A stretch of DNA of 54,188 bases. Source: Oculina patagonica (Eukaryota). The notes below the pieces were generated by a model that was not told the origin of the DNA, ran no database searches, and was given only the letters and a program-made list of their open reading frames with translations. Within the stretch, counting starts at the first letter, position 1; each line of letters starts with the position of its first letter. The stretch covers positions 21,647,813 through 21,702,000 of the forward strand of contig NC_135770.1 of assembly GCF_052425735.1 (NCBI RefSeq), in the 5' to 3' direction. This document shows positions 20,430 to 48,800 of the stretch, piece after piece. A program made the translations under genes and the position numbers.

Positions 20430-20746
20430 ACATTTATACCATGCCATAGAAAATACAGCCAATCAGAATACAGGAAAGCCGTTGTATATTCGACAGTATT
20501 CAACCCAACCTTCCCATCGTGCGCTGCGATCTTATTCTCGATGAAATTTAGTGAGCGTATTTTCTATGGCATGGTATAAAATAGTTACACAACACTTTCT
20601 CGTGGTATACTATGGAATATCCCACTTGTCACTTGTATTTTCTTCGTATACACACTCGCCTAAAGGCTCGTGTGTATACCGAGAAAATACAAGTGACTCG
20701 TGGGATATTCCATAGTATACCACTCGAAAGCGTTGCATAACTAGTA
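20430..20746. repeat. Dispersed repeat made of two adjacent hairpins
   Basis: tttataccatgccatagaaaatac / gtatttctatggcatggtataaa and tggtatactatggaatatcccac..gtcacttgtattttct / agaaaatacaagtgactcgtgggatattccatagtatacca. Confidence 0.7.
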
Positions 20747-24800: not shown

Positions 24801-27800
24801 CCTTTTTTATGCAGACAAAAAAACATCGAAACTGGCTCGAAAGTAATAAAGTGTAATAAAAAGATACTAAAACGCTAAAAATGTATACAAGGTTACAAAC
24901 AATAGACGGAATCGGCTAATGTGTTAATGTATCCTTGTTTCCACCCAATTCATACGTACCACGTGATGGTTTTTTTAGGGAGGTTACAACTGTACAATTT
25001 CTTACACGAAGCTGAGTGTATGGGAATATGTACGAACAGAACAATTGTAATCTCCCAAATGAATCATCACATGATCTGTATTAACCTTAGCCGAATCTGT
25101 CTATGATGCCACCTTTGTAAACAGAAGCAACAGGCGAATGTTTTTCTTGGGAAACAGTTAAAAATATTGGAGGAGGGTTTTTTAAAACTTTCCGAGCCAA
25201 CGATCATTCTATAAAACACAGAGTCCGAATCTAATGATTGTTTTGTTATAAATTGTCACAAAGAAAAACGCGTTCAAAAACTTCGAATTCTGAGAAAAAC
25301 AAAATGACGCAATTGATGAAAATATTACATGAAAGATTATCTTGTCATGGATGTCAGTCATTCGAAGTGCTGATTATTGATTTGTGCTTACACATAAAAT
25401 TAGCATATGTGTTCAAACGCACTAAAATTAAAATTAACCTTTTCAATGATGTCATTTATAAATTTCAACGATTAAACAATAGAGGCTATTTCTGATCTAG
25501 TTCTGTCAGTATTTCAATACTGCTAATAAAAACTAGATTTATATTTAGTTCTTCTTTTCATTCGTCAAGAGTTTCATGAAAGTAAAACGAAAATTATTGC
25601 AGCCGTTCTTATCTTATTGACCCGCTTTAGAACGAAGAGAAAAGGGACTTTCCCTTTCGCAAATATTTTCAACCTTTATTTACTTTCTTAGAATCATGAA
25701 TATTTCATTTTTTCTAGACAAGCAAATGTTGTGATCGCGTGGCCTGATGTCGCCGTTTCGGTTTCACCGACGAAAATCGATTCTCTGTCTGTCTCTTAGC
25801 TTCGACTTAACTCTGTAGATTTTAAAAACGGAGCCTGAAACTTTGGCATGGGTTCAAAAGAATCACCTCATTCTTGTGGCACGAAGAAAGCCGCCGACAG
25901 AAGGAGGTCGAATTTTTTCTGGTATGCGATTGACTCACTTATTGCACATGGCCATCTTGTTTTATCAGCAAATGCTAAAAATATCCGATATCCTCCGAGG
26001 AAAATCTCGCTAATATGACATATACTAAAACCCGAAACAACGAAACGAAACCACCGAAAGGTCTGCAGTCTGCCTGCACACCGGTTAGCTTGAATATAAA
26101 CGCTTAGGTTTACGATGAGCTCTCGATTATGGTAATGAGTTTCGCTTGTCTCGGCCGTTTCGGTCGTTTTGGCGCGGATTTTGTTTTGGTGGCTTCGCTC
26201 GTTTCGGTGGTTCCGTTTCGTTGTTTCGGGTTATACTTTTAATACATGGCATGTAGTTCATGTCCACAAATATGAACTGTTGCAGGAACGAACGGCAAGA
26301 AACCGGAACGTACCATGCAGACAACTCAGAGAACTGAGCCGAGTCAGAATAAAACTGAGCCAAATCGGCAACCATGCAAAGAGACAACTATAAGTTGCTA
26401 TAAACGAGGAATTATTTTTATATGTACACAATGAATGACCTTCCGTCACAGTCCAGAGAGCCAGAATTATCGAACGAAACGGTTGAAGTTCTTCCATTAG
26501 AACCAAAAGCTGAAGGGCGGGAGCTTTGCAGCGATGTGAATACATTATTTACGTTTTCTCTCGACGAGTCAACCTCAGTAGTTGCGGAGGCGAAAATCGA
26601 CACAGAATCTAACACGTTGAACATCCTTCTCACGAACTGCAACCTCGTGACAGTCGGACGGTCAGACACCCAACAACTCAAATGTAATTGTCATTTACAA
26701 GAGGAGAACAAATGTGTTAGCAACAGTGACAATGAGGTTCGGTCAGACAGTGCATCGAAGACTGCAGATTCTGCAAATCGCAGCCTTGGAGGGCGTAAGC
26801 CAACAGAATACCAATTGCAGCATTTTAATGAAGCAGCAGAAGACTGCAAACCGGTTGACTCGGATGAGATAGTGGGGAGCGTCGAGCCATTGTTGCCTTT
26901 GATCAAAAAGCAAGGATATCTTAACGGATCACAATGTGAGAGAATCATGGAACAACTTGAGATTTTACAGGACAATGGAAAATTTGGAGAGCATGAGGGT
27001 CTTGTCACATCATATCTCTGTCGTTGTGGGGAAGAAAAGAATTCTGACTTGGAATTGGCATTAAGAATTGAGCGCGGAGTGGCATTTTCTTATCACAAAG
27101 AGTTCAAAAACAGCAAGCGTATGTTCACCTCAGTCATAAAATCAGACAAAGAGCTTAGAAATCCGAATATTTTAATTGCAAGAGCGTACTTTTTACTTGT
27201 CGCTGACTATAGAAGTAAAAAGGTCATAAAACTCTCCCCGCTCTTTGAATTTCTTAGACGCAGCGAGTTTTTACTTCAAAACCACGACTCGCCAGAGGAC
27301 TGGGCCGAATTGTATTACAACTACGGCTCTGTATGGTTGGTTTACATGAGCATGATCCCGGATGATGAGAGGAATGCGCAAGCGCGAAACACTGCTCGGG
27401 GGAATGCAAGATACTACTATGAGCAGGCGATTTCTTTCTGCAAGAAAGATCCACGATTGAGAGTTCAAATAAAGAAGCAAACATACATTCATCTTAAACT
27501 GGCTGCACTACTACTCGACTGCAGTTCGAAAGCCGCCCGAACTCGTCAAAAAGTCATTCCACCAACTGACATCAAGGAGGCTAAAGAACATCTGGATTTC
27601 GTACAGTACAAACTTGGCGTTTGTTTACCGCTAGGTACTCGTGTGCAGCTTTTAAAAACTCGTTCGGATCAATTTTATCGTCAGGAAATATTTCAGCTAG
27701 CCAAAGAAACAGCCGAAGATGCGTTACAGATCGCTTTGTCCAACGAATTTTACACCGAAATAGACACTCTACGGGAAAGAATTGACTTTCTTGACAAATT

Positions 27801-30800
27801 GTGTGAGGAAGGAATCAAAGTGATTGCTATAAAAGAAATCTCAAGTTCCAGCAGTGAAATATGTTGTAGCGAATCTGCAGAATCTGAGTAGGAGATTAAA
27901 AAGATAAATCAGAATTTAATTAGTGGATAAGATTTATTTAAATTTTGCGAGAAATAAATCACCCACAAGAAATACTTCAAGAAATTCTCGGGAGTATTTC
28001 CAAAGAATTCCTGTGAAATTCGGCACACACTTTCACGTTATAATAAAAAGACAACAACTTAGTTGCTCTCCCTCTCCTCTCTCCCTTTCTCTACATTTCT
28101 CTTTTCCCTCTTTATGGTCTGGATTTTTTTGGCAAATTTTGGAAATAATCTGTATTCCAATTTGGTAAAAAAAAAAAAACCCTCAAGATAAAGACATTAA
28201 ACAAAAGATGTGATCAAGAAGACAGGCGGCGTGGCCAAGTGTTTTAGCTTGATAGCGCTGAATTTAAAATCAGTCTCCATCTTGCCATTATCTGAATATT
28301 TCCCTCTGTAGTAACTGATATACTAAAGCTCACATTTTATTCGATGGTTTTACTGATTATACGCGTGGATAGTTAACGAGTTTCGTCGTATTTTTCCGAG
28401 CCCGCAGTGGCAAGGAAAAATGCTCCAAAATGAAGCACGACAGTGTAATACGGAATAGTTATTTAGCAGAGGGCATGTACTAAGTCACGCCATTCAGAAC
28501 GTTCTTGGGCTAATCCAGCAATCTTTTGCCAATCCGACAGAATTTGGCGCTGTTCCCACCATCGGTCGAATAATAATGTTAGTATGTATAAAGCAAAAAT
28601 AAGCCGACATAAATTTTCATTTATACGTTTAATTCAATTCCTGCAGATGTATCGTTATATCTAAGCTTAGAAGATCAACAATATTAAAAAGACATATTTC
28701 AGCATAGCTATAATTCTATGAATTATTAAAACGGAAGTGGTTTCAATAGTGAAACTGATGTATCTGTCACACTGGCGCACCCTTGGAAAAGGGACTTTCC
28801 CTTACAAAACTTTCGAAACTTTTTTTCACTTATGAGATTAATTTACATAATAAAAATATAAAACATGAATATATTATTTTCTCTGCGTGCACATTTTCTC
28901 AACGTTTTTCTCGACGTTTTGCATCTACAAGAAGGCAGCTTGACAAGCAGCTAGAAGAAGATATTCGAAACACGCGTTTTAATAGTAGTCGTGAAGAAAT
29001 TTTAGTCGACAAATGCATGCAAAACAATTTGGCCTCAATTCAAAACAATAACACGAATGCTTAAAATAGAATATGAATGGCATCAAAGAGGCACTAGTCT
29101 TCGCACGATCACAAACAGCGATGGCGGACCTTGCCAGACAGAACGTACTACACGTCCACAAATATGATCTGTTGCAGGAATAAACGGCAAGAAACAGGAA
29201 CGGATCTTACGGACAACTGAACAACCAAACAAACAACCACAAGTTGTTAAAAACAAGGTGTTATCTTCATGTGTACACAATGACAAACCTTCCCCCACAG
29301 TCCGGAGAGCAATATTCATCGAACGAAACGGTTGAAGTTCTTCCAAGAGAGCCTATAAAAGCTGAAGGGCAAGAGTCTCGCAGCCATGTGAACACATTAT
29401 TTACGTTTCTTCTCGACGGTCCAGCCTCAGTTACTGCTGAAGCAAAACTCGACACAGAATCTAACACGCTGAACATCCTTGTCACGAACTGCAATCTCGT
29501 CACAGTTGGACAGTCAAATCCTCAACAACTCAAATATAATTGTTGTTTACAAGAGGAACACAAATGTGTTAGCAACATTGACAATGAGGTTCGGTCAGAC
29601 AGTGCTCCGAAGACTGCAGATTCCGCAGATCGCAGCCTTGGGGGACGTTTAAATCAAGCAGCACAAGACTGCAAACCGGTTGACTCGGATGAGATAGTGG
29701 TGAGCGTCGAGCCATTGTTGCCTTTGATCAAAAAGCAAGGATATCTTAACGGATTACAATGTGAGAGAATCATGGAACAACTTGAGATTTTACAGGACAA
29801 TGGAAAGTTTGCAGAGCATGAAGGTCTTGTCAAGTCATATCTCCATCGTTGTGGGGAAGAAAAGAATTCTGACTTAGAAATGGCATTAAAAATAGAGCGC
29901 GGAGTGGCATTTTCTTATCACAAAGAGTTCAAAAACAGCAAGCGTATGTTCACCTCGGTCATAAAATCAGACAAAGAGCTCAGAAATCCGAATATTTTGG
30001 TTGCAAGAGCGTACTTTTTACTTGTGGCTGACTATAGAAATAAGAAGGTCGTTAAACTCTCTCCGCTCTTTGAATTTCTTAGACGGAGCGAGTTTTTCCT
30101 TCAAAACCACGAGTCGCCAGAGGACTGGGCCGAGTTGTATTACAACTATGGCTCTGTTTGGCGGGTTTACATGAGCATGATCCCGGATGATGAAAGGAAT
30201 GCGCAAGCGCGAAACACTGCCAGAGGAAATGCAAGATACTATTATGAGCAGGCAATTTCTTTCTGCAAGAAAGATCCACGATTGAGAGTTCAGATAAAGA
30301 AACAAACATACATTCATCTTAAACTGGCTGCACTACTACTCGACTGCAGTTCGACAGCCGCCCGAACTCGTCAAAAACTTATTACACCTGTTGACATCAA
30401 AGAGGCAAAAGATCATCTGGATTTTGTACAGTACAAACTTGGCGTTTGTTTGCCGTTAGGCACACGTGTGCAGCTTTTAAAAACTCGCTCGGATCAATTT
30501 TATCGTCAGCAAATATACCAGCTAGCCAAAGAAACAGCCGAAGAAGCGTTACAGATCGCTTTGTCCAACGAATTTTACACCGACATAGACCCCCTACGGG
30601 AAAGAATTGACTTTCTTGACAAACTGTGTGAGGAAAGAATCAGAGTGATTGCTATAAAAGAAATCTCAAGTTCCAGCAGTGAAATATGTTGCAGCGAATC
30701 TGCAGAATCCGAGTAGGAGATCAAAAAAAATAAATCAGAATTTAATTAGTGGATAAGATTTCTTTAAATTTTGCAAGAAATAAATCACCCAGAAGAAATA

Positions 30801-33800
30801 CTTCAAGGAATTCTCGGGAAGTCAAATGAATTATCGAGAATTCTCGTGAAAATTTTCAAAGAATTCCTGTGAAATTCGGCACACACTTTCACGTTATAAT
30901 AAAGAGACAACAACTTAGTTGCCCTCCCTGTCTTCCTTTCCTTTTTGCCCCGTCTCCCTTAAGTACCCTTTCTCTACATTTCTCTTTCCCCTCTTTACGG
31001 TCCGGATTTTTTGGTAAATTTTGAAAATAATGCGTATCCCAATTTGATAAAAAAAATCCCTTAAGATAGCGACATTAAACAAAAGATGTGATCCAAGTAG
31101 AGAGGCGGCGTGGCCTAGTGTTTCAGCTTGATGGCACTGAATATAAACTCTGTGGGTCCCTTGTTCATAGTCTCCATGCTGCCATTATCTGAATATTTCC
31201 CTCCTCAGTAACTGAAATACTTACAGCTTATTCGATGGTTTAACAGATAATACGCTTGGATATTTTACGAGATGAGAAATATTTTTCCGAGCCCGCAGGG
31301 GCAAGGGAAAATGCTCCAAAATGGGGCACTACAGTGTATTAATACGGAATGCTGTCTTAGCCACGTAGATCCTTGAAGAAGCAGAGGGCATGCACAAAGT
31401 CACGCCATTCAGTGATCTCGGGCTGATCTAGCAATCCTTTGCCATCCAACCGAATTTGGCGCAGTTCCCACCATCAGTCAAATAATAATGTTACAAGTAT
31501 GTGTAAAGCGAAACTAATAAGCCGGCATAAAGTTTCATTTATGTTTAATTCAATTCCTGCAGCTGTGTCGTTCAGCTTCTCTTAAATAAAAGGCAAAGAT
31601 CAAACCCAATAAAAAGACATATTTCAGTATAACTTTTATTCTGTGACTTATTTATCATTCTTCAACAGTTTGAAACAATGCAAACGGAAGTGGCTTGCAG
31701 AAGTGAAACTGATGTATCCGTCGCTCTAGCGCACCCCTGTAGTAGGGACTTCCCCTTACAAAACTTTCAAAACATTTTTCATACAGATATTATTATAAAA
31801 CATGAATATCTTATTTTCGCTGCGTGCAAGGTTTCTCGAATGTTCTCTAGATAGCCATGTTTTGCTTCTACTAGGAAAGAAGCTCTGTGTACAGCGAATA
31901 CCGAAGAAATTCGAAACACACGTTTTAGAAGTCGTGAGAGATTTTTCGGCGACGAAATGTATGCAAAACACTTTGGCTTCAATTCAAAACAATTACAGGG
32001 CGCCAAATAGAACACTGTCCTACTGAATCCATTAAGTTGACACAATGAGGAATAGTTCTGAACAGCGAGGCGAAGCTCCAAGACGAGCGAAACGAAGATT
32101 CATCCGTACGCGGAACTGAAGTATCTTTAAAGCAACCCATGCCTGAAGGGCAACCAGGTGGTTTCAACGGCGTGTTATTCAAGCTTTCTCCAGACGAATC
32201 GAACTCGATAATCGCGGAAGCAAACCTTGACGCACAAACAAAGACGTTGAACATAATTCTCAGGGAATGGAACGCCGTTTTAGTCGGCAACTCAAAAGCC
32301 GGACAAGTTGAGAATAATTGTCATTTGGATAACAAACAAAGTCCACAGCAAAAACTACAAAAACGTTCCTTCGAAGATGACCTTCAGGCTGACAGCGGTA
32401 CAAAAGAACAGTATTGCAGTGAACAACAAAAGACAATAATAAAAGAAGACGAATACCAACTGCAGCCTTTTAATGAGGCAAACACGCTCTGCAAACAGGC
32501 TCCGCCGCTTGAAGTTGTCGTGGATGTCGAGCCACAGTTACCTTTGATCAAAATACAAGGATATCTAAACGGACCACAATGCGAGGAAATCATGGAACAG
32601 CTTCAAGGTCTACAAGACGATGGAGAGTTTGAAAAACATGAATGTTTGGTTACTTCGTACCTAGACACTTTTGCTTTCAAAAACAATACTGACATGGCAT
32701 TAGCCTTGAAAATTGAGCTCGGAGTCGCTTGTTCATACCACAAAGATTTCAAACACAGCAAACGCCTTTTTACATCAGTAATAAACTATGATCGCATTTC
32801 TCAGCTAAGAAATGCAAACATTTTACTAGCCAGAGCCTACTATCGACTCGTACAAGACTTTAGATATCGAAAAAATAGGAAACTGTCCTCTCTTTTTCAC
32901 TGCATGGAAAAAAGTGAGTTTTTACTGCAAAACCACGACTCGCCGGAGGACTGGGCCGAGGTGTATTACAACTATGGCTCACTTTGGTTAGCGTATATGA
33001 GCATCATTCCGGATGACGAGAGAAATGCGCAGGCGCGAGACGACGCCAGGAGAAAGGCGAAAAATTACTTCGAAATGTCAATTGAATCCTGTAAAAAAGA
33101 TCCTCGATTGAGAGTGCAGATTAAAAAACAGATATACGGTCACCTTCGAGTCGCTGCGGTGTTACTTGACTGCACCTCAACTGTCGCCCGAATTCGAAGA
33201 AAAGTCATTTCCCAACAAGATATTGAAGATGCGAGAAAACACCTTAATATTTTGGAGCACCAACTTAGCAGCAACATTCCTCGAGGTACACGCGTGCAGA
33301 TTTTAAAAATGCGTTCTGATCAATACTATCGCCAAGGACCAGCAATGTATCAACTGGCCAAAGAAACTGCTCAGGAAGCTTTTAGAATTGCACTATGTCA
33401 TGGATTTAACACTGAACTGGAATCGCTTCAAGAGCGAATTGATTTTCTCGATCAGTTGTGCGAAGAAGCAGTGTGCAAAGAAAGGATAACGGTGCTCGTT
33501 GATAGTGATAGTGAAACTTCTGGTAACGACGCCAGCTGTGAAACAAGCGGCAGTGAAAACTGAAAAAAAAAATGTAAAAAAAGCCAGACCCCAGTTGCTA
33601 AAGAGACTTCAAACTGTCCATAAACATAAACTACAGTTGAACCTCGCTAATTCGAACTCGGTTATTTCGAATTCCCCGTTAATTCGAACTAAAACCCGTT
33701 TCCCTTGGATTTGCCCTTCAGTCATTTACTATCGGCTATTTCGAACTCCCGCTATTTCGAACTATTTCGAACTCCCGCTATTTCGAACTATTTTTTGTTT

Positions 33801-36800
33801 CCCCTGACGGTTCGAAATAGCGGGGTTCAACTGTAATTCTATACTATTACAATTTAATGTAAGCTGGAAAGGGAATAATAAAATTACAATTCCAAGAATC
33901 GAAAGTGTTCTGCAAAAAAAATTTGAATGGTATTCATAATTCGTTAAGGGACTTTCCCTTTTACCAACTGAAGTTATTACAGTTTTATTCTTAATATTTA
34001 ATGCCTCGGATAGCAATATATTCTCCAAGATTTCTCACAACTGGTTTGATTGCGTCTTCGGCGTCGCTTTCGTTTATGCTGTTTTTTTACATGTTCACTA
34101 TGAATTACTTTTGCCAGGCTGAGTTTGTCACTTTTTGATGTGTAGGCGAGTCTCTTTTTACAATTGTTTTACTAGCATAATCGCTTCAGTCTCTTATCCA
34201 GCTTTCCTTGGAAAGTTGCGCCAAACGTGTTTCAAAACAATTTTTGTGTGACGCGGGTGAGGTTGAATTTCGTAATCCAGATCTCTAAATGAAACATCAC
34301 AGGAATTCAACAACTGAGTTCTAAATACATACACTAATGCCCTTGGCTACAACCTTTTTTTTCTTTAATCAGTCAATGAGCTTAAATTATTTTGTAGGTC
34401 TAGAGGCGACCCTTTCCAAATATTGGAAGATCATAAAAAACACAACCACAATTTCTTTTCCCAAGAATCGGGAAACAAGATGCAAAAAGATGCTATAAAT
34501 ATGTTAAAAGCTGATGTTGCAACATAATTTTAAGAAAGGTCTTATTTCATTTTCTTTTTTTATGTATCAGTCAATTCCAAGCGAGATCACCCCCCCCCCC
34601 CCCCCAACCCCCTGGCATTTGACCGCTACTGAAGCCCAGATAGTAAGGAATTTGATCGAACAGAAGCCCGGATGGTCGGGCATTTGACCGAATGACCGAC
34701 ATTGACAATGAGGTTCGGTCAGACAGTGCTCCGAAGACTGCAGATTCCGCAGATCGCAGCCTTGGGGGACGTTTAAATCAAGCAGCACAAGACTGCAAAC
34801 CGGTTGACTCGGATGAGATAGTGGTGAGCGTCGAGCCATTGTTGCCTTTGATCAAAAAGCAAGGATATCTTAACGGATTACAATGTGAGAGAATCATGGA
34901 ACAACTTGAGATTTTACAGGACAATGGAAAGTTTGCAGAGCATGAAGGTCTTGTCAGGTCATATCTCCATCGTTGTGGGGAAGAAAAGAATTTTGACTTA
35001 GAAATGGCATTAAAAATAGAGCGCGGAGTGGCATTTTCTTATCACAAAGAGTTCAAAAACAGCAAGCGTATGTTCACCTCGGTCATAAAATCAGACAAAG
35101 AGCTCAGAAATCCGAATATTTTGGTTGCAAGAGCGTACTTTTTACTTGTGGCTGACTATAGAAATAAGAAGGTCGTTAAACTCTCTCCGCTCTTTGAATT
35201 TCTTAGACGGAGCGAGTTTTTCCTTCAAAACCACGAGTCGCCAGAGGACTGGGCCGAGTTGTATTACAACTATGGCTCTGTTTGGCGGGTTTACATGAGC
35301 GTGATCCCGGATGATGAAAGGAATGCGCAAGCGCGAAACACTGCCAGGGGAAATGCAAGATACTATTATGAGCAGGCAATTTCTTTCTGCAAGAAAGATC
35401 CACGATTGAGAGTTCAGATAAAGAAACAAACATACATTCATCTTAAACTGGCTGCACTACTACTCGACTGCAGTTCGACAGCCGCCCGAACTCGTCAAAA
35501 ACTTATTACACCTGTTGACATCAAGGAGGCTAAAGAACATCTGGATTTCGTACAGTACAAACTTGGCGTTTGTTTGCCGTTAGGCACACGTGTGCAGCTT
35601 TTAAAAACTCGCTCGGATCAATTTTATCGTCAGCAAATATACCAACTAGCCAAAGAAACAGCCGAAGAAGCGTTACAGATTGCTTTGTCCAACGAATTTT
35701 ACACCGACATAGACCCCCTACGGGAAAGAATTGATTTTCTTGACAAACTGTGTGAGAAAAGAATCAAAGTGATTGCTATAAAAGAAATCTCAAGTTCCAG
35801 CAGTGAAATATGTTGCAGCGAATCTGCAGAATCCGAGTAGGAGATCAAAAAAGATAAATCAGAATTTAATTAGTGGATAAGATTTATTTAAATTTTGCAA
35901 GAAATAAATCACCCAGAAGAAATACTTCAAGGAATTCTCGGGAAGTCAAATGAATTATCGAGAATTCTCGTGAAAATTTTCAAAGAATTCCTGTGAAATT
36001 CGGCACACACTTTCACGTTATAATAAAGAGACAACAACTTAGTTGCCCTCCCTGTCTTCCTTTCCTTTTTGCCCCGTCTCCCTTAAGTACCCTTTCTCTA
36101 CATTTCTCTTTCCCCTCTTTACGGTCCGGATTTTTTGGTAAATTTTGAAAATAATGCGTATCCCAATTTGATAAAAAAAATCCCTTAAGATAGCGACATT
36201 AAACAAAAGATGTGATCCAAGTAGAGAGGCGGCGTGGCCTAGTGTTTCAGCTTGATGGCACTGAATATAAACTCTGTGGGTCCCTTGTTCATAGTCTCCA
36301 TGCTGCCATTATCTGAATATTTCCCTCCTCAGTAACTGAAATACTTACAGCTTATTCGATGGTTTAACAGATAATACGCTTGGATATTTTACGAGATGAG
36401 AAATATTTTTCCGAGCCCGCAGGGGCAAGGGAAAATGCTCCAAAATGGGGCACTACAGTGTATTAATACGGAATGCTGTCTTAGCCACGTAGATCCTTGA
36501 AGAAGCAGAGGGCATGCACAAAGTCACGCCATTCAGTGATCTCGGGCTGATCTAGCAATCCTTTGCCATCCAACCGAATTTGGCGCAGTTCCCACCATCA
36601 GTCAAATAATAATGTTACAAGTATGTGTAAAGCGAAACTAATAAGCCGGCATAAAGTTTCATTTATGTTTAATTCAATTCCTGCAGCTGTGTCGTTCAGC
36701 TTCTCTTAAATAAAAGGCAAAGATCAACAACAATAAAAAGACATATTTCAGTATAACTTTTATTCTGTGACTTATTTATCATTCTTCAACAGTTTGAAAC

Positions 36801-39800
36801 AATGCAAACGGAAGTGGCTTGCAGAAGTGAAACTGATGTATCCGTCGCTCTAGCGCACCCCTGTAGTAGGGACTTCCCCTTACAAAACTTTCAAAACATT
36901 TTTCATACAGATATTATTATAAAACATGAATATCTTATTTTCGCTGCGTGCAAGGTTTCTCGAATGTTCTCTAGATAGCCATGTTTTGCTTCTACTAGGA
37001 AAGAAGCTCTGTGTACAGCGAATACCGAAGAAATTCGAAACACACGTTTTAGAAGTCGTGAGAGATTTTTCGGCGACGAAATGTATGCAAAACACTTTGG
37101 CTTCAATTCAAAACAATTACACGGGCGCCTAAAATAGAACACTGTCCTACTGAATCCAGTAAGTTGACATCAATGAGGCATTATAGTTCGCATGAACAGC
37201 GATGGCGAAGCTTCCAAGACCGAGCGAAACGAAGATTTCATCCGTACGCGGAACTGAAGTATCTTTAAAGCAACCCATGCCTGAAGGGCAACCATGTGGT
37301 TTCAACGGCGTGTTATTCAAGCTTTCTCCAGACGAATCGAACTCGATAATCGCGGAAGCAAACCTTGACGCACAAACAAAGACGTTGAACATAATTCTCA
37401 GGGAATGGAACGCCGTTTTAGTCGGCAACTCAAAAGCCGAACAAGTTAAGAATAATTGTCATTTGGATAACAAACAAAGTCCACAGCAAAAACTACAAAA
37501 ACGTTCCTTCGAAGATGACCTTCAGGCTGACAGCGGTCCAAAAGAACAGTATTGCATTGAACAACAAAAGACAATAATAAAAGAAGACGAATACCAACTG
37601 CAGCCTTTAAATGAGGCAAACACGCTCTGCAAACAGGCTCCGCCGAGTGAAGTTGTCGTGGATGTCGAGCCACAGTTACCTTTGATCAAAATACAAGGAT
37701 ATCTTAACGGACCGGAATGCGAGCACATCATGGAACAACTTCAAAGTCTACTAGACGATGGAGAGTTTGAAAAACATGAATGTTTGGTTACTTCGTACCT
37801 AAACACTTTTGTTTTCAAAAACAATACTGACATGGCATTAGCCTTGAAAATTGAGCGCGGAGTCGCTTGTTCATACCACAAAGATTTCAAACACAGCAAA
37901 CGCCTTTTTACATCAGTAATAAACTATGATAGCATTTCTCAGCTAAGAAATGCAAACATATTACTAGCCAGAGCCTACTATCGACTCGTACAAGACTTTA
38001 GATATCGAAAAAATAGGAAACTGTCCGCTCTTTTTCACTGCATGGAAAAAAGTGAGTTTTTACTGCAAAACCACGACTCGCCGGAGGACTGGGCCGAGGT
38101 GTATTACAACTATGGCTCACTTTGGTTAGCGTATATGAGCATCATCCCGGATGATGAAAGAAATGCGCAGGCGCGAGACGACGCCAGGAGAAAGGCGAGA
38201 TATTACTTCGAAATGACAATTGAATCCTGCAAGAAAGATCCCCGATTGAGAGTGCAGATAAAATTACAGACTTTTGGTCACCTACGAGTGGCCGCTGTGT
38301 TACTTGACTGCACCTCAACTGTCGCCCGAATTCGAAGAAAACTGATTCCCCAACAAGATATTGAAGATGCGAGAAGGCATCTAGATATTTTGGAGCACCA
38401 TCTAAGCAGCAACATTCCTCGAGGTACACGCGTACAGATTTTGAAAGCGCGTTCTGATCAATACTATCGCCAAGGACCAGGCATGTATCAACTGGCCAAA
38501 GAAACTGCTCAGGAAGCTTTGAGAATTGCACGTTGCCGTGGATTTAACACTGAACTGGAATCGCTTCAAGAGCGAATCGATTTTCTCGATCAGTTGTGCG
38601 AAGAAGCAGTGTGCAAAGAAAGAATTACATTGCTTGTTGATAGTGAAACTTCTGGTAACGACGCCAGCTGCGAAACAAGCGGCAGTGAAACTGAAAAGAA
38701 ATAAAAATGCCACACTCCAGGGTTTTTTTTATACCATCAATGAAAGTAACAGTTTGCTAAAGAGACTTCAAAGTGTCCAAAAACATTCAATAATTCTATA
38801 CTATTACCATTTAATGTTAGCTGGAAAGGACAATAATTTAATCACAATTCATAATTAATTTAGGGACTTTCCCTGTAACCCAAGTCAGTCACGGCTGGCT
38901 GAAAATATTCAAACAAATAAAGTTTTTGAATATGATTCATAATTAATTCAGGGCTTTCTCTTTTACCCAAGTCAGTCACCGCTGGCTATTTTGTTGAACC
39001 TTTTTTGAAATATTCAAACAAATAAAGTTTTTGAATATGATTCATAATTAATTCAGGGCTTTCTCTTTTACCCAAGTCAGTCACCGCTGGCTATTTTGTT
39101 GAACCTTTTTTGAAATATTCAAACAAATAAAGTTTTTGAATATGATTCATAATTAATTCAGGGACTTTCTCTTTTACCCAAGTCAGTCACGGCTGGCTAT
39201 TTTGTTGATCCTTTATTCATTTATTCAAGAAAATGTCAAAACATAATATCATACTTCCCACCCCTTGCCTCCAGCTTTCCCTGCCCCCCACCCCCCTATC
39301 ACCCCACCCTACCGAACACACTCCCCTAATTTCCAATTACTACTAGTTCTATGACTTATTTATTCCGAAAGTGGTTTTAAGTGGTGAAACTGATGTATCT
39401 GTCACACTGGCGCACACTTGGAAAAGGGACTTTCCCTTACAAAACTTTCGAAACCTTTTTTCACTTATGAGATTAATTTGCATTATACAGATATAAAACA
39501 TGAATATATTATTTTCTCTGCATGCACATTTTCTCAATTAAGTTTTCTCTGGATAGCGACGTTTTGCTTCTACTAAAAAAGCAGTTCTGCGTACGGCGAA
39601 AAAGAAATTGGATTAAGAAATTAAACCCACGTTTTAGAAGTCGTGAAGGATTTTTCGTCGACAAATGTATGCAAAACACTTTGGCTTCAATTCAAAACAA
39701 TTACACGGACACTTAAAATAGAATACTGTACGATCGAATTGAGTTAGTTGACATCAAAGAGGCATAAGTCTTCGCACGAACAGCGATGGAAAACCTCCCA

Positions 39801-42800
39801 AGACAGAGCGAAACGAAGATTTCATACGACCGCGAAACTGAAGCACCTTTAAACCAATCCCAGCCCGAAGGACAACAAACTTGCAGTGGTCTCGTATTCA
39901 AGTTTTCTCCAGACGATTCAGCGTCGATAATCGCTGAGGCAAACCTTGACGCACAAACAAGTACGTTGAACATAATTTTCAAGAAGTGGAACACCGTATT
40001 AGTTGGCAACTCAAACGCTGGACAAGTTGACTGTAATTGTCATTTTGACAACAAGCAGAGTCCACAGCAAAAACGTTCCTTCGACAAAGAAATTCAGTCA
40101 GACAGCGGTCCAAAGGAAGAGTATTGTGAACAACAGAAGACAATAACAAAAGACGAAGAATACCAACTGCAGCCTTTTTTGAATGAGGCAAACAGGCTCT
40201 GTAAAGAGGCTCCACCAGATGAAATTGTTGTTGATGTCGAGCCACAGTTACCTTTAATCAAAATACAAGGATATCTCAACGGATCGCATTGCGAGCAAAT
40301 CGCTGAACAACTTGAAGGTCTACAAGACGATGGACAGTTTGATAAACATGATCGTTTGGTTACTTCGTACTTGAACCATTCATCGTGCAAAGACATGGAA
40401 TTAAGCTTAAAAATTGAGCGCGGCGTGGCCTTTTCTTACCAGAAAAAATTCAAACAGAGCAAACGCGTTTTTACATCAGTAAAAAACTTTGATACCATCT
40501 CTCAGGTAAGAAATGCAAACATTTTACTAGCCAGAGCCTACTATCGACTCGTACAAGACTTTAGATATCGAAAAAATAAGAAACTATCCGCTCTTTTTTA
40601 CTGCATGGAAAAAAGTGAGTTTTTACTGCAAAACCACGACTCGCCGGAGGACTGGGCCGAAGTGTATTACAACTATGGCTCACTTTGGTTAGCGTATATG
40701 AGCATCATTCCGGATGACGAGAGAAATGCGCAGGCGCGAGACGACGCCAGGAGAAAGGCGAGATATTACTTCGAAATGTCAATTGAATCCTGTAAAAAAG
40801 ATCCTCGATTGAGAGTGCAGATTAAAAAACAGATATACGGTCACCTTCGAGTCGCTGCAGTGTTACTTGACTGCACCTCAACTGTCGCCCGAATTCGAAG
40901 AAAAGTCATTCCTCAGCAAGATATTGAAGATGCGAGAAAACACCTTAATATTTTGGAGCACCGACTTAGCAGCAACATTCCTCGAGGTACACACGTACAG
41001 ATTTTGAAAACGCGTTCTGACCAATACTATCGCCAAGGACCAGGCATGTATCAACTGGCCAAAGAAACTGCTCAGGAAGCTTTGAGAATTGCACGTTGCC
41101 ATGGATTTAACACTGAACTGGAATCGCTTCAAGAGCGAATCGATTTTCTTGATCAGTTGTGCGAAGAAGCAGTGTGCAAAGAAAGGATAACGGTGCTCGT
41201 TGATGGTGATGCTGAAACTTCTGGTAACGACGCCAGCTGTGAAACAAGCGGCAGTGAAAACTGAAAAAAAAAATGTAAAAAAAGCCAGACCCCAGTTGCT
41301 AAAGAGACTTCAAACTGTCCATAAACATAAACTAATTCTATACTATTACAATTTAATGTTAGCTGGAAAGGGAATAATAAAATTACAATTCCAAGAATCG
41401 AAAGTGTTCTGCAAAAAAAAATATGAATGGTATTCATAATTCATTAAGGGACTATCCCTTTTACCAAATAATAATAATAATAATAATTACGAATTTGTTG
41501 TGCGCAAATTCCATACGTAAATGTTCAAATGCGCATTACAAAAAAACAAAAAGTTAAAATTACAGCTTAAAAATTAAAATTCTTAAAAACTAAGTTATAG
41601 GTTGAAAATTACAACTGAAGTTATTACACCCCTCAGTAACAGATCCAGTGGAATCTTAATCCTCGCCGGGTTTGTTAGGGGAAAAAATCACTGGGTTGGC
41701 CAAATTTCCACTGGGTCGGCTTATTTTCGACTAGGTTTTTGTAATAGGTTTATTCCATGAGGGACTCCTGGTTTATTCGCGTACGATAAAAACATGGGCA
41801 ATTGTGGAGAATGCGGGGTTTTCTATTACTTTTTTCCGCCCGCAAAGAGGCTGCTTTATAGTGACTAAACTGAAGTGAGAAAAGAAGAGTGTTGCAAGCA
41901 GTAGCGTAGCGAGGATTTTTTCAGAGGTACGCACAGTTTTTAAAATCATCCTCTACTGCACCCCGCCCCCTTCAAATCTGGACGCTATTGCTTTGCAGTA
42001 TTTTCTTTATCATCAGCCTAATGACACCATGTTGTATACTGAAGGCCTGTAGGAACGAATTTGAACCGAGGGCCCCAAAGTTTGCATTGTGATGAGATAT
42101 TATGGGCCGAAAGGCTTGTCGATGTCCGGGGGGGGGGGGCATCATCCCCTGGGAATATTTAAAAATTTTGATACGTTCTATAAATGCCATTCGTCGCATT
42201 GAGCAACCCCTATCGAAGTGCTTTTTCTTGACAATTTCGCTCCCGAATGGCTTTCCGTTCCGGAACTAGAACTGCTGGTAGAACTTTCTATAGCTTTCGA
42301 CTTTTGTAGAAACTGTTGTTTTTTTGTTGGTTTATTCGTTTTCAAAAATACGCTGGGGTTTTCAATTCACACTGCACAGTCACTGCACAGTCGCTGGGTA
42401 CTGGGGAGGCTAAATTTTCACTGGGAAGGGGAAAAATCCACTGAGTCGGGTTCCGCTGGGTCTGTTACAAAGGGGTGTTTTATTCTTATTATTTAATGAC
42501 TCGGATAGCAATATATTCTCCAAGATTTCTCACAAGTGGTTTGATTGCGTCTTCGGCGTCGCTTTCGTTTATGCTGTTTTTTTACATGTTCACTATGAAT
42601 TACTTTCACCAGCCTGAGTTTGTCACTTTTTGATGTGTAGGCGAGTCTCTTTTTACAATTGTTTTATTAGCATAATCGCTTCAGTCTCTTATCCAGCTTT
42701 CCTTGGAAAGTTGCGCCAAACGTGTTTCAAAACAATTTTTGTGTGACGCGGGTGAGGCTGAATTTCTGAATCCAGATCTCTAAATGAAACATCACAGGAA

Positions 42801-45800
42801 TTCAACAACTGAGTTCTAAATACATACACTAATGCCCTTGGCTACAACCTGATTTGACTTGTAATCAGTCAATGAGCTTAAATTATTTGTAGGTCTAGAG
42901 GCGACCCTTTCCAAATATTGGAAGATAATAAAAACACAACCACAATTTCTTTTCCCAAGAATCGGTAAAAAAAAAAGATGCAAAAAGATGCTATAAATAT
43001 GTTAAAAGCTGATGTTGCAACATAATTAAGTTAAGAAAGGTCTTATTTCATTTTCTTTTTTTATGTATCAGTCAATTCCAAGCGAGATCATCCCCCCCGG
43101 CCAACCCCCGGGCATTTGATCGCTACTGAAGCCCAGATAGTGGGGAATTTGATCGAACAGAAGCCCGGATGGTTGGACATTTGACCGAATAACCGTTGTC
43201 ACAAAATGTGTTATTAACTATTTAAAGCGCTAGCGAGCTCAAGCGCGTGAAGTTAGTATTTGGTTACGTTAATGTAAAGTACCTAGTTTCAACGTACCGT
43301 ATTTTCTCGATTAAACGCCCACGGCGTTTATTTCAAACTTGGCCCGATAGGGCCGGCGTTTATTTGAATTCAGGAGTTTTTTCAAGCCCTATGTTTCTAA
43401 GAAACGATTTTTATTCATTATTTTTGGCAGCTTTATAATTAGACATTGTTTTAAAATCATATTAAACCTTTAAAAATTGTTTAAGGGGTTTATTTTCAAA
43501 TACAACTTGGAGACCCGGCGTTTATTCGGGGCCCGGCGTTTAATCGAGAAAATACGGTATCTATCTTTTCCTATTAAAATTGGCTGATAAATAGGGCAGG
43601 AGTGTCCGTTTAGACCAAGTGTTAACGATAAGGTAACTGGTTGTTAGCGAATCCGCTCGTACTCGTAGGCAAAACGACTGCAATTCAACGAGAAAACCGA
43701 CTCACAATGACATTTCAGCCCCGACTGGTGGGGCATTTGACCATGCAACTGGCCCACATAGTGGGGAATTTGAACAGACATTTTGAAAAAAGACAAATGC
43801 CCGGGGGTTTGCCCGGGGGGGGGGGATGATCTCGCTTGGAATTGACTGACACATTTTACGTAAGGTTTCAATGGTCTGACCTCTTTCAATAAGGTATGAA
43901 ATTACTTGGGACCCAGCGCGGTTTAGTAATGAACTTTTTCAGCAATCAACATTTTACTTCCAATCTACAACAGTTTCAAAAAAGAAAAGCGGAGTTTATG
44001 GTAGAATTAGAAAAATAATGCCGATAACTCTTTCATACACTGAAGCGGAAAAGCGGCGTTTTACCTTTCAGAGCTTTCGAAACCTTTGTTTACTTGTTTG
44101 TTTTTTGTAGCTCGACTTACATGCAAATATCAATCATAAATATTTCAATCAGTTCTCTGCGTGCAAGTTTTCATGTAAGAAGCTCTGGCTTGAATTCAAA
44201 ACATTCCTCGGGGTATTAAAGTATGTTAACAAGTATCCGATGTCCTCGGAGATGATCTGGCAACACAGGCGCCTGAACTAGAACAAAACTGAACCGAATC
44301 GCGAACCAAAGATAGCCTGTGTACAGCCGTCCCACACAGGCTAACCAAAGGCAACTGAGCTGACAACAAAGACTGGTACTGTATCTTCATACATGAACCT
44401 TCAACGCAGACCGGAATGGAGGTTTCATCCGACCGCGGAACAGAGGTAACTTTAGAGCAACCCAAAACTGAAGGACAGCAATCTTCCAGCGATCTCAACA
44501 CCGCGTTATTTACGTTTCCTCTCAACGATTCTTCCTCGATAATTGCCGAAGCAAACCTCGACGCACAAACAAAGACGTTGAACGTGACTCTAAGAAACTG
44601 GAACGCAGTTTTAGTCGGCCACTCAAACAATGAACTTGACTGTATTCCTCATTTGCATCTAGACCATAAGCAAAATGCACCGCACAAATGTTTCAACGAA
44701 ACCCTTCAGGCTGACAGCGGTCCAAAGAAAGAGTTTTGCAATGAACAACAAAAGACAATAATAAAAGATGAACAAGAATACCAACTGCAGCCTTTTAGTG
44801 GGGCAAATAGACTCTACAAACAGGCTCTGTCGGGAGAAATTGTTGTTGATGTTGAGCCACAGTTACCTTTGATCAAAATACAAGGATATCTCAACGGATC
44901 GCAATGCGAGGAAATCATGGAACAACTTGAACGTTTACAAGACGATGGACAGTTTGAAAAACATGATCATCTGGTTGCTTCGTACCTAAACCGTTTTGCG
45001 TGCAGAAACAATACTGATATGGCATTAGCCTTGAAAATTGAGCGCGGAGTGGCTTTCTCTTACCAAAAAGAACACAAACAAAGCAAGCGACTTTTGACCT
45101 CAGTAATAAAATCTGACACAATTTCTAAGCTTAGAAATCCAAACATTTTATTGGCAAGAGCCTACTGTCGACTCGTTCAAGACTACAGATATAGAAAAAG
45201 TACGAAACTATCCGCTCTTTTTCATTGGGTGAGAAAAAGCGAGTTATTATTGCAAAACCATGAATCGCCTGCGGATTGGTCTGAAGTGTATTACAACTAT
45301 GGCTCACTTTGGTTAGCGTATATGAGAAAGATCCCAGATGACGAGAGAAATTCGCAGGCGCGAGACGATGCTCTAAGAAAGGCGAGATATTACTTCGAAA
45401 TGACAATCGAATCAGGCAAGAAAGATCCCCGATTGAGAGTGCAAATTAATAAACAGATATATGGTCACCTACGAGTCGCTGCTGTGTTACTTGACTGCAC
45501 CTCAACTGTCGCCCGAATTCGAAGAAAAGTCCTTCCCCAACAAGATATTGAAGACGCGAGAAAACACCTGGATATTTTGGAGCACCAACTTAGCAGCAAC
45601 ATTCCTCGAGGTACACGCGTACAGATTTTGAAAGCGCGTTCTGATCAATACTATCGCCAAGGACCAGGCATGTATCAACTGGCCAAAGAAACTGCTCAGG
45701 AAGCTTTGAGAATTGCACGATGTTATGGATTTAACACTGAACTTGATTCGCTTCAAGAGCGAATCGATTTTCTCGATTAGTTGTGTGAAGAAGAAGTGTG

Positions 45801-48800
45801 CAAAGAGAGGATTACATTGCTCGTTGAAAGTGACACTGAAACTGGTAACAATGCCAGCTGTGAAACAAGCGGCAGTGAAACTGAAAAGAAACTGGAAAAA
45901 CAGCCAGACCCCGGGTTACGAAAAGATAAAGTTTGAGACAATTTGCTAAAGTGACCTAAAATTTTCCATAAACATACCCTAATCCTATTTTTTTACAATT
46001 TAGTGTTAGCTGGAAAGGACAATAACTTAATCACAATTCCAAGCAATCAAAAGTGTACTGGGACAAAAATTGAATGAGTTATAATTATTAAATAAACTGC
46101 GGTTGTTTACTGGGATTTTGACCACAGGCAGACCACCTTATGTGTTCGTGGTTAGTAATCGTTCACATATACATAGGACGAACAAAAGAAATATGTTGAA
46201 ATCTATGAGAGTTATGAATAAGGCCCTGAAAATTACATTTCTAAATGAATCTCGTTCTAAATATTTCAATAAACGTGATTTAAATGTTTATCGACTCGTG
46301 TGTGGTGTTTGTTTGCGTTTCTGGGCCGTATTAATCGTTTTTGTCCTATCTTACGTTCGGCCGAAGGCCGGTAAGAGGAGAAAAGATATCTAGTTGAACA
46401 CTCGAAGATGAATTTCATATCTCCGCGCAACCAGTATTATATTCTCTATTTAATTCAGGGACTTTCCCTTTTACCCAAGTCAGCCATGGCTGGCTATTTT
46501 GTTGATCCTTTATTTGAAATATTCAAACAAATAAAGATTTTGAATATGATTGATAATTAATTCAGGGACTTTCCCTTTTACCAAAGTCAGTCATGGCTGG
46601 CTATTTTGTTGATCCTTTATTTGAAATATTCAAATCATTTATCCAAACAAATATACGTAAGAATCATGCGCCTCGGATAGTAATATATTTGACTGCGTGG
46701 CGTCGCTTTTGTTTTTGCTCTTTATGTTGGCTGCATGCTTACTATAACTTTTCGCCAATTTGCGTTTTTATAGAACGAAAGAAATGCGCTTGCGTGTTGG
46801 TTGGTGGAAAACGCTTGCGTGTTAGTTTAGTGTTTATCTAAATCGATTTTTTTATGGAGAACTAGACTGTTCCTCTTGAATCACGATATTGCATACAAGA
46901 TCGTGAAAATTGGACAAGGTAGGACTAGCAATGTTCTTTTAAGTATGTTTGGTATATGAGGCATCTAGGTAGTAAATGAAAAAGTGGCTAAGCTCGACTC
47001 CTGTTGAGAGATCTCGAATTTTTTTCCGAGAAACTTGTGTCAACCGAGGCCACCCCAATAAAATGTTTCGTTTTCCATCGCCCCGTCTCTTGTGATGGTG
47101 GGTGGTCAGTGGGTCGGATGAGTGGTGAGGTTCGACTCCCTGCTTACAGAACTTGAATTTTTTTTCCGTATACCTTGTGTCACTGCCTGGCTTACTGAAT
47201 ACATCTTTCTTATATTTCTACAAAGCATACATAACCAAACTTCTTTTAATATCAATAAAGTTTATCAAGTTGACAATGGATGGGAATAGAGCCGAAATCG
47301 TTAATGTGCGATCGTGATTCTCTTGATGTACGAATGGATTCTCATGACAAAAATTGAGAGAAATGTACGGTAGTAAGTAAGGAGAAAATTAAATTTCGAG
47401 ACAGGACTAAAAGGCTTGAGTAGAAATTGCTTAGAGCTGTCAAAGGCAAGCATTACAACAATGACAGACTTCAGAACGTGATTTAGTATTCAGGGACTTT
47501 CCCTTTGAACAAATTTATATACAAATACCGTAATTTATCCAAACAGATCATGCTAGTCATGTGCTTAGCAGGTGTTTTGAATGTTTTTTTCTTTTTAAAA
47601 AAAAAAAAAAAATATTCTTCTAAAACCTGCCAATTTTGTTTATTTGCTCTTTGGGAAAAACACTCATTAGCTAGTCGAGAAAGAGTGATTTCTTTGAGAA
47701 ATAAAATATCTACGAAGCTTATAAGATCCTATTAAAAGAAATGTTTTATGGAGCACTGAAATTTTCTCTTTCAAAACCGAATGCTAGACAACATGGCGTA
47801 TACAAGGGAAGATATATGATATTTTAATTTGTTTGGCGAGGTAAAAATCCGTGCCATGAAGGCTTTTTAACATTTGCATACGCAAAAAAATAAATTGTAC
47901 AAACGGTTTTATCACGGCAAGAAAACAAAAAGCATGGTTCAAAAGTATCCCGAGAAAACAAAGACTGTCTGCCGTTGCGCTTTTATTTCCAACCATTTCT
48001 ACTTGCGCCCGGAAAGTGGTAACTACGTAAGAACCAATGAAAGACACTACATGGATTTCTGTTGCCTTGAGTTATCATTATAGAATTTTTTTCGAATATT
48101 GAACGTCCCATTCTTTGATGGGAGGCGCGGTGGCCTAATGGTTAGAGCGCCGGACTCCGGATCGAGCTGTCCGAGTTCGAGCCCCGGCCGGGGTCACTTG
48201 TTTTGTGTTCTTGGGCAAGACACTTTAACTCTCATAGTGCCTCTCTCCACCCAGGTGTATAAATGGGTACCGGCGACATAATGCTGGGGGGGGGGGGGAA
48301 CCCTGCAATGGACTAGCATCCCATTCAGGGGGGAGTAGAAATATTCCTAGCCGCTTAATGCTACGGAAACCGGGATAAGCTCCGGCAGTGTGGGCCGCTT
48401 GGCTCGTGGCTTCTCCTTCATTCTTTGAGGATGGCTAAAAAGAGCGTGCGACGAGAGGAGTCTTTCAACCAGCTACAATGTACGCAAATACTGAATGCCT
48501 GGAGAGGAGGATGCTCTCTATGGTGAACTATGGTGAACTGGGGAGTCCGCCGGCGCGATAAGGGTACATTTTTCAGGTTGGGGGTGTATAAAAGGGCAGG
48601 AATTTTACGAGGTTAAGTATAGAAAAGGCTAGGAAAAACTGGCTTTTTAAAATATCTCAAACAGACGCTCCTACTGGCTGATTAAAGATAATGGGTAAGG
48701 GTTTGCACCTCGGGGCGAAGCCCACGCGTGTAAAACTTTTTTGAGTAACCCCCCCCCCCCCCCACCACGGGATTGAATGGCTGTTAGTAACACTAATTTT

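Follow-up and report, generated by a model that had tools for sequence, protein, structure and literature searches.

Conserved NF-kB-type sites in the promoters and 3' flanks of a coral-restricted tandem gene array in Oculina patagonica

We analyzed a 54,188-nucleotide (nt) stretch of the Oculina patagonica genome (NC_135770.1, positions 21,647,813 to 21,702,000; hereafter, the window) that holds, at 26.4 to 50.5 kb, eight tandem plus-strand copies (G1 to G8) of a single-open-reading-frame (ORF) gene of about 480 amino acids (aa), together with repeated copies of the canonical NF-kB (kB) site GGGACTTTCC. Comparative genomics supports the claim that these are functional kB elements, and we consider it very probable that the words act in cis. 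A more specific reading is likely as well, namely, that the words are sites for an NF-kB homodimer, that a promoter module (module A) makes the working gene copies NF-kB responsive, and that a spacer module (module B) is a shared enhancer, combining kB with gamma-activated site (GAS)-like words, that has grown by tandem duplication. Promoters driven by kB sites are a known class; what appears to be new is their occurrence at an uncharacterized, coral-only gene family.

A search of the window recovered eight exact copies of GGGACTTTCC, all on the plus strand, at 25644, 28791, 33948, 38863, 39426, 46458, 46565, and 47493, whereas dinucleotide shuffles gave a mean of 0.05 and a maximum of 2. The next base is a C after all eight copies, and the repeated word is therefore the 11-mer GGGACTTTCCC. 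Allowing up to one mismatch raised the count to 12 sites (the eight exact copies and four variants), all of them on the plus strand, which is the gene strand, and all between 25644 and 47503; no such site was found in the rest of the 54-kb window or on its minus strand. Our search thus reproduced all eight coordinates and the plus-strand restriction described in an earlier note on this DNA, and the absence of sites from the first 25 kb, also noticed there, was borne out at this mismatch level. The variants listed in the same note fared differently. Those at 31745 and 36869 (both GGGACTTCCCC), 39161 (GGGACTTTCTC), and 41448 (GGGACTATCCC) are one mismatch away, the first two still matching the consensus GGGRNWYYCC and the last two each being one base off it. 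The remaining two, at 38951 and 39056, have lost one base and carry a substitution at another (GGGCTTTCTCT); they are decayed copies within a 105-nt tandem repeat that fail the consensus, and we rejected them as kB sites.

The consensus is accordingly met by the eight exact GGGACTTTCC copies and by two copies of GGGACTTCCC. This looser pattern also matches the window at 20614, 20702, and 21965; the first two matches are GGGATATTCC words contributed by the arms of a long hairpin-forming inverted repeat (20590 to 20730) that is unrelated to the array. Genome-wide (529 Mb), we counted 201 copies of GGGACTTTCCC versus 175 of a reversed control word, which indicates that the 11-mer is not generally overrepresented. 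Eight of the 201 copies nevertheless lie inside the 22 kb of the array, so that enrichment over the genome background, a comparison proposed in the earlier note, is evident.

Self-comparison of the spacers showed that the sites fall in two module families, A and B, all on the plus strand. Module A, made up of a roughly 95-nt block and a core promoter, lies upstream of G2, G3, G5, and G6 and holds, in order, an ETS-like CGGAAGTGG, GTGAAACTGA, the kB 11-mer, a TATAAAA box 49 to 66 nt further on, and then CATGAATAT, with the ATG 333 to 453 nt downstream of the kB site. The G2 module (28731 to 28870) has CGGAAGTGG at 28732, GTGAAACTGA at 28749, GGGACTTTCCC at 28791 to 28801, and TATAAAA at 28857, and that of G6 (39366 to 39510) has GGGACTTTCCC at 39426 to 39436 and TATAAAA at 39492. 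G3 (31685 to 31810) and G5 (36809 to 36935) carry the variant GGGACTTCCCC, at 31745 to 31755 and 36869 to 36879, with TATAAAA at 31794 and 36918, respectively. Upstream of G1 we found a diverged promoter module, in which GGGACTTTCCC (25644 to 25654) lies 778 nt from the ATG and a CATGAATAT core-promoter box begins at 25695; the sequence around this site can be aligned for about 80 nt to the promoter of g1, a family member in Orbicella, and the same CATGAATATTTCATT box then follows.

The promoter kB site is kept in G1, G2, G3, G5, and G6, which have near-full-length ORFs, and is missing in the damaged copies, that is, in the truncated G4 (which has no module A), in the prematurely stopped G7, and in the broken G8. 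The decayed module A of G7 (44047 to 44172) has lost its TATA box and reads GGCGTTTTACC at the kB position (44055). Contigs from what are probably RNA runs begin at 36942 and 37006 and continue unspliced into the G5 ORF, with zero depth at 36767 to 36933. Given the downstream TATA box and the cover of the ORF by these contigs (the RNA nature of the runs being a guess), the kB sites lie in the promoter DNA of what is probably a transcribed gene. Tentatively, the contig starts fit a start site about 25 to 30 nt past the TATA box, with the kB site at about -70 to -95. A contig joint connecting 38643 and 41213 was rejected as a splice and represents a chimera of paralogs. Just upstream of the G6 promoter, a C-rich stretch (39245 to 39348; CCCTGCCCCCCACCCCCC...) with depth near 800 in one run and many contig breaks is probably a high-copy repeat.

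Module B lies 159 to 785 nt downstream of the stop codons of G3, G5, G6, and G7. It begins directly after the first AATAAA in the cases of G3 and G6 and is amplified as 105- to 107-nt tandem units in the G5 and G7 spacers. Past G3 (33888 to 33958), the GAS/STAT-like word AATTCCAAGAA at 33888 precedes the kB site GGGACTTTCCC at 33948 to 33958, the first AATAAA standing just upstream at 33877; past G6 (41387 to 41458), AATTCCAAGAA at 41387 precedes the kB variant GGGACTATCCC at 41448 to 41458. The 105-nt tandem repeat past G5 (38863 to 39228) contains the exact site at 38863, the two decayed copies, and the one-mismatch copy at 39161, and the two 107-nt units past G7 (46403 to 46621) contain the exact sites at 46458 and 46565. 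The last 11-mer (47493 to 47503) is isolated, about 1.6 kb upstream of the broken G8, in a short module-B-like flank that has only ATTCAGGGACTTTCCCTTTGA in common with module B. Two other features were seen in these spacers. An insertion of about 200 nt in the G3 3' flank (33634 to 33833), missing from the G6 flank, has inverted CAGTTGAACC / GGTTCAACTG ends and 26-nt tandem repeats and looks like a miniature inverted-repeat transposon. The G6-G7 spacer also contains about 1 kb (41470 to 42476) that the G3-G4 spacer lacks; this stretch starts with (AAT)n right after the module-B kB variant.

The earlier note had placed the sites in at least three contexts and had argued that duplication alone was insufficient to explain them. 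We found only two homologous contexts and rejected three independent ones, since the site at 25644 aligns with the promoter from another species, being a diverged copy of the promoter module, and since the B and B' units are homologous to one another. With only two module families, duplication does explain the number of sites within the window; the argument against duplication fails there and holds on the comparative evidence presented below. One large event is apparent, a 5.1-kb segmental duplication of the G2-G3 pair (29244 to 33563) into G4-G5 (34692 to 38704) with 98.8% identical spacers, which removed the N terminus and promoter of G4. The note had also named a genome-wide repeat unrelated to these genes as a finding that would speak against it. 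A 112-nt module-B unit and a 181-nt module-A stretch had no match in the 529-Mb genome outside C13:21.67-21.69 Mb, which is this array, and a motif-bearing dispersed repeat or transposable element was rejected because both modules are confined to the array.

We then compared the array with family loci in four other coral genomes, reached through exact-protein look-ups: Pocillopora verrucosa, Orbicella faveolata, Desmophyllum pertusum, and a coral assembly from ENA. Two ATGs of the ENA coral are preceded, at 301 and 371 nt, by GGGACTTTCCC or by the variant with C in place of T. Orbicella has a kB word 476 nt upstream of one gene and a module B past the stops, about 100 nt of which can be aligned. 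The Desmophyllum locus also has an alignable module B, as well as promoter-type sites. GGGACTT[TC]CCC occurs 402 and 436 nt upstream of two Pocillopora genes in surrounding sequence that could not be aligned, and the 3' flanks in this species carry GGGAATTTCCC as the kB site. Each of these loci contains two to five sites, versus 0.01 to 0.06 expected. The kB site is thus kept at orthologous or family loci, at the same two positions (promoter and 3' flank), in five species.

These cross-species alignments were anchored on the motif, so that the core-versus-flank identities derived from them are biased; we set them aside and used instead a shared-k-mer test, which is free of that bias. The strand-specific 11-mers of the noncoding DNA of the array that are common to all five species are only GGGACTTTCCC, GGACTTTCCCT, and AATTCCAAGAA, and the first two of these are overlapping words, shifted by one base, of GGGACTTTCCCT. 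To judge from this comparison, the kB word is under purifying selection. The proposal that the sites persist while their flanks diverge gains support in two ways: the same 11-mer is found in the four other corals, and a k-mer test that does not presuppose the motif singles it out.

A candidate factor is encoded in the genome. A genome profile search detected a Rel-homology gene at C4:57.03 Mb (PF00554, above the curated cut-off) whose recognition loop, RFRYPCEGPSHGG, is of the p50 type, and a second, weaker Rel-homology match, NFAT-like, on C7. In p50-DNA structures, the loop histidine goes with 5-bp half-sites, and homodimers prefer 11-bp sites. The exact sites of the array read GGGAC-T-TTCCC (5+1+5 bp), and the orthologous and paralogous variants keep GGG...CCC 11 bp apart. 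A p50-type loop with histidine therefore fits the 11-bp site, and the constant final C points to a p50-like homodimer and away from a p50/p65 heterodimer. Binding of canonical kB sites by cnidarian NF-kB, as stated in the earlier note, is documented in published electrophoretic mobility shift assays (EMSA), binding-array data, and reporter assays (PMC10329013; bioRxiv 10.1101/640177). Three kB sites in the Nematostella TRAF3 promoter mediate its activation by cnidarian NF-kB (PMC10329013), and NF-kB-dependent, cnidarian-specific induced genes have been described in Nematostella (bioRxiv 10.1101/2021.05.13.443009). Our literature searches found no paper pairing GGGACTTTCC with Nematostella, and a broad search for kB sites in coral promoters gave nothing specific. 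About 17 distant paralogs of the array genes (23 to 29% identity) lie in two clusters, at C9:14.73-15.10 Mb and C9:25.92 Mb; four of these C9 paralogs (26 to 28% protein identity) have a different palindromic 11-mer, GGGGAATCCCC, 294 to 507 nt upstream of the ATG.

The third conserved word, AATTCCAAGAA, holds TTCCAAGAA, a GAS/STAT-type palindrome (pattern TTCNNNGAA). In the window, in Desmophyllum, and in Orbicella, it precedes the module-B kB site by 45 to 59 nt, and in Pocillopora it follows the 3' kB site by 113 to 128 nt. It thus lies beside the 3' kB site in four of five species; the ENA coral has the word, with no strict kB site nearby. A genome search with PF02864 (STAT_bind) gave no match, but its controls were also silent, so that it does not show absence. 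IRF genes in the genome number at least six. The ETS-like and IRF-half-like words, which are 40 to 60 nt away from the kB site, have been lost from Orbicella, Desmophyllum, and Pocillopora, and only the kB site and the core-promoter box of module A are conserved across species. We rejected an enhanceosome of the interferon-beta type, with sites packed within about 55 bp and all conserved: a strict enhanceosome is unsupported because the ETS-like and IRF-like words are conserved only among the closest species. Elsewhere in the genome (C1:4.12-4.95, 5.79-5.96, and 22.03-22.46 Mb), dozens of other GGGACTTTCCC copies belong to a second repeated module, in which the word lies about 20 nt from AAAGTGAAACCAAAAGTGA, resembling an interferon-stimulated response element, and beside a splice-donor-like GGTAAG. 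The ORFs that follow this module, at a distance of 1 to 3 kb, are very large and encode TPR + CHAT domains; they form a further expanded family, which may be wired in the same way as the array genes.

Our model is that a p50-type NF-kB homodimer would bind the GGGACTTTCCC words and drive the coral-restricted array. Each near-full-length copy has a compact module A as its promoter, in which the TATA box follows the kB site at a distance of about 50 to 65 nt. The spacer element, module B, comes directly after the probable poly(A) signal; it pairs a kB site with TTCCAAGAA and most likely would serve as a shared enhancer for the neighboring genes, multiplied in two spacers by 105-nt tandem duplication. 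Activation of a pathway such as Toll-like receptor or STING signaling would then be predicted to induce the array.

Several observations weigh against this model. In the other species, a strict flank site is present in only about half of the family genes. Among the paralogs of the window, the whole 95-nt module-A block is conserved, beyond the kB word alone, and across species only the shared-k-mer test is unbiased, the core-versus-flank identities being biased toward the motif. We place the start site, and regard module B as untranscribed, only tentatively, since both points rest on contigs that were only guessed to be RNA and since contigs cannot define transcript ends. Both NF-kB binding and inducibility at this locus are what we infer from sequence, and the probe used in published cnidarian EMSA was GGGAATTCCC, not GGGACTTTCCC (PMC10329013; bioRxiv 10.1101/640177). 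Finally, another factor recognizing GGGA...TCCC may be involved.

In its fullest form, this last alternative holds that the element is functional and is read by a different protein, either the second, NFAT-like Rel-homology protein or an unknown coral factor, with no NF-kB control. Conservation reflects constraint and says nothing about the identity of the factor, the weaker Rel-homology match on C7 supplies a candidate, and the motif does contain TTTCC, the core of NFAT-type sites. However, GGGACTTTCCC, GGGACTTCCCC, GGGAATTTCCC, and GGGGAATCCCC all keep their GGG and CCC ends 11 bp apart, which is the geometry of a p50 homodimer and not of a single GGAAA half-site, and the NF-kB of this genome has the p50-type loop; we therefore regard a different factor as unlikely. 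It also seems improbable that NF-kB binds the sites to set an expression that is constitutive or specific to a cell type, instead of driving immune induction; one such setting would be a cell lineage dependent on NF-kB, as cnidocytes reportedly are in Nematostella. In favor of this reading, no immune challenge is known for the runs behind the probable RNA contigs, which would thus reflect baseline expression, and a developmental role of NF-kB is established in Nematostella. Against it, the kB site is paired with GAS-like and IRF/ETS-like words, and gene copies turn over rapidly and leave pseudogenes; both features are more typically seen at inducible defense loci, although neither point is decisive. 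That the sites are mere passengers of recent tandem duplication is very hard to credit: all window sites do fall in two duplicated module families, with about 99% identity between G3/G5 and G2/G4 from the segmental duplication and 96% likeness among the 105-nt units, but the same 11-mer recurs at the same positions beside unalignable flanks in four other coral genomes, is among only three shared by all five species, and decays along with the promoter in the damaged G7. Pure duplication is thus largely excluded by the cross-species sites and the shared-k-mer test.

Taking p50-type NF-kB as the most likely factor, the array can be set beside known kB-controlled systems. Like the canonical kB enhancers of Ig-kappa and the HIV-1 long terminal repeat (LTR), the array has the identical 10-mer GGGACTTTCC, in a promoter-proximal position before a TATA box. 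Its several sites of one kind, some of them tandemly duplicated, resemble those of the HIV LTR, and O. patagonica possesses a Rel-homology protein whose loop is of the p50 type. The array differs from the Ig-kappa/HIV type in that its word always extends to 11 nt by a final C, that its host, a coral, has only one NF-kB gene, and that binding and inducibility are predicted. The vertebrate IFIT and GBP clusters offer another parallel: they too are tandem arrays with fast birth and death of copies and short TATA promoters carrying kB, IRF-like, and GAS-like words, and the predicted fold of the array proteins is TPR-like, as is that of the IFITs. In contrast to IFITs, the array proteins have no sequence relationship or specific fold relationship to them, and the IRF-like word occurs only in close relatives. 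To our knowledge, no interferon system is known in cnidarians. It is conceivable, if rather doubtful, that the array is what an interferon-stimulated-gene cluster would be in a coral, encoding signaling proteins or effectors restricted to this lineage, each having a TPR-like sensor domain and an N-terminal beta motif (putatively RHIM-like, with no Pfam support), under combined input from NF-kB and STAT (plus IRF/ETS) through an arrangement of promoter and enhancer kept across stony corals; if so, it would be a natural read-out of coral innate immune activation. The nearest cnidarian case is the Nematostella TRAF3 promoter, which also has several strong kB sites, there within 1 kb of the start site (PMC10329013). 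Its sites, in contrast to those of the array, are GGGAAAGCCCC, GGGAAACCCCC, and GGGGAACTCCC, and the gene is single-copy and conserved across animals (PMC10329013). TRAF3 is also a validated direct target, whereas the array is a coral-only tandem family for which the support is comparative.

Current thinking on immunity, symbiosis, and bleaching in corals gives NF-kB activity a central place, and direct cnidarian NF-kB targets are almost unknown, TRAF3 of Nematostella being among the few validated. At the locus described here, the promoters are compact (150 bp), each with a single perfect site that is deeply conserved, and a putative kB/GAS-like enhancer accompanies them. As predicted targets, the array promoters could be used as reporters or quantitative PCR markers of coral NF-kB activity, and an uncharacterized protein family found only in corals emerges from this locus as a likely participant in the response.

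The copies of the gene differ in integrity. G1 (26422 to 27891; 489 aa), a member of the coral-restricted family, G2 (29244 to 30716; 490 aa), G5 (37202 to 38704; 500 aa), and G6 (39786 to 41264; 492 aa) are complete single ORFs. G3 (32139 to 33563; 474 aa) lacks the extreme N terminus, its N terminus being shorter than that of G5 because of an in-frame TGA just upstream. G4 (34692 to 35840; 382 aa) is a 5'-truncated copy of G2 without module A, G7 (44416 to 45780; 454 aa) has a premature TAG, and G8 (49076 to 50524), in three ORF pieces broken by a TAG and a TAA, is a probable pseudogene. Named homologs come only from stony corals (Desmophyllum, Orbicella, and Pocillopora) and are annotated as uncharacterized; no literature mention of LOC110050954 was found.

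An AlphaFold (AF2) model of G5 built on 28 homologs left residues 1 to 166 disordered and folded residues 167 to 483 into a TPR-like all-alpha solenoid, with a predicted local distance difference test score (pLDDT) of about 90. The fold matches of this C-terminal domain were the TPR domains of LGN, KLC, and TTC19 (template-modeling [TM] scores of 0.4 to 0.6 at 10 to 13% identity); being generic TPR solenoids, they led us to reject IFIT or any other specific fold identity. The array products are thus predicted to consist of a disordered N terminus and a TPR-like domain. No Pfam family was assigned to the array proteins of the window, and TPR_2 was reported weakly in 2 of 28 homologs; a PDB sequence search returned only noise, and a protein atlas gave weak TPR hints only. 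The nearly sole conserved part of the disordered N terminus is NxVxVG(Q/N)S, at 26608 to 26670 and homologous positions. No RHIM domain was reported by Pfam at E <= 0.1, and the strands modeled by AF2 at residues 37 to 67 are of low confidence.

Two minus-strand exons of a D-glutamate cyclase gene flank the array, one on its low-coordinate side (23748 to 24725; GLUCM-like_C domain) and one on its high-coordinate side (50999 to 51430; D-Glu_cyclase domain), and all eight genes of the array seem to be nested in an intron of that opposite-strand gene. The nesting looks old, since the family sits inside the D-glutamate cyclase gene in Pocillopora verrucosa and adjoins it in the ENA coral.

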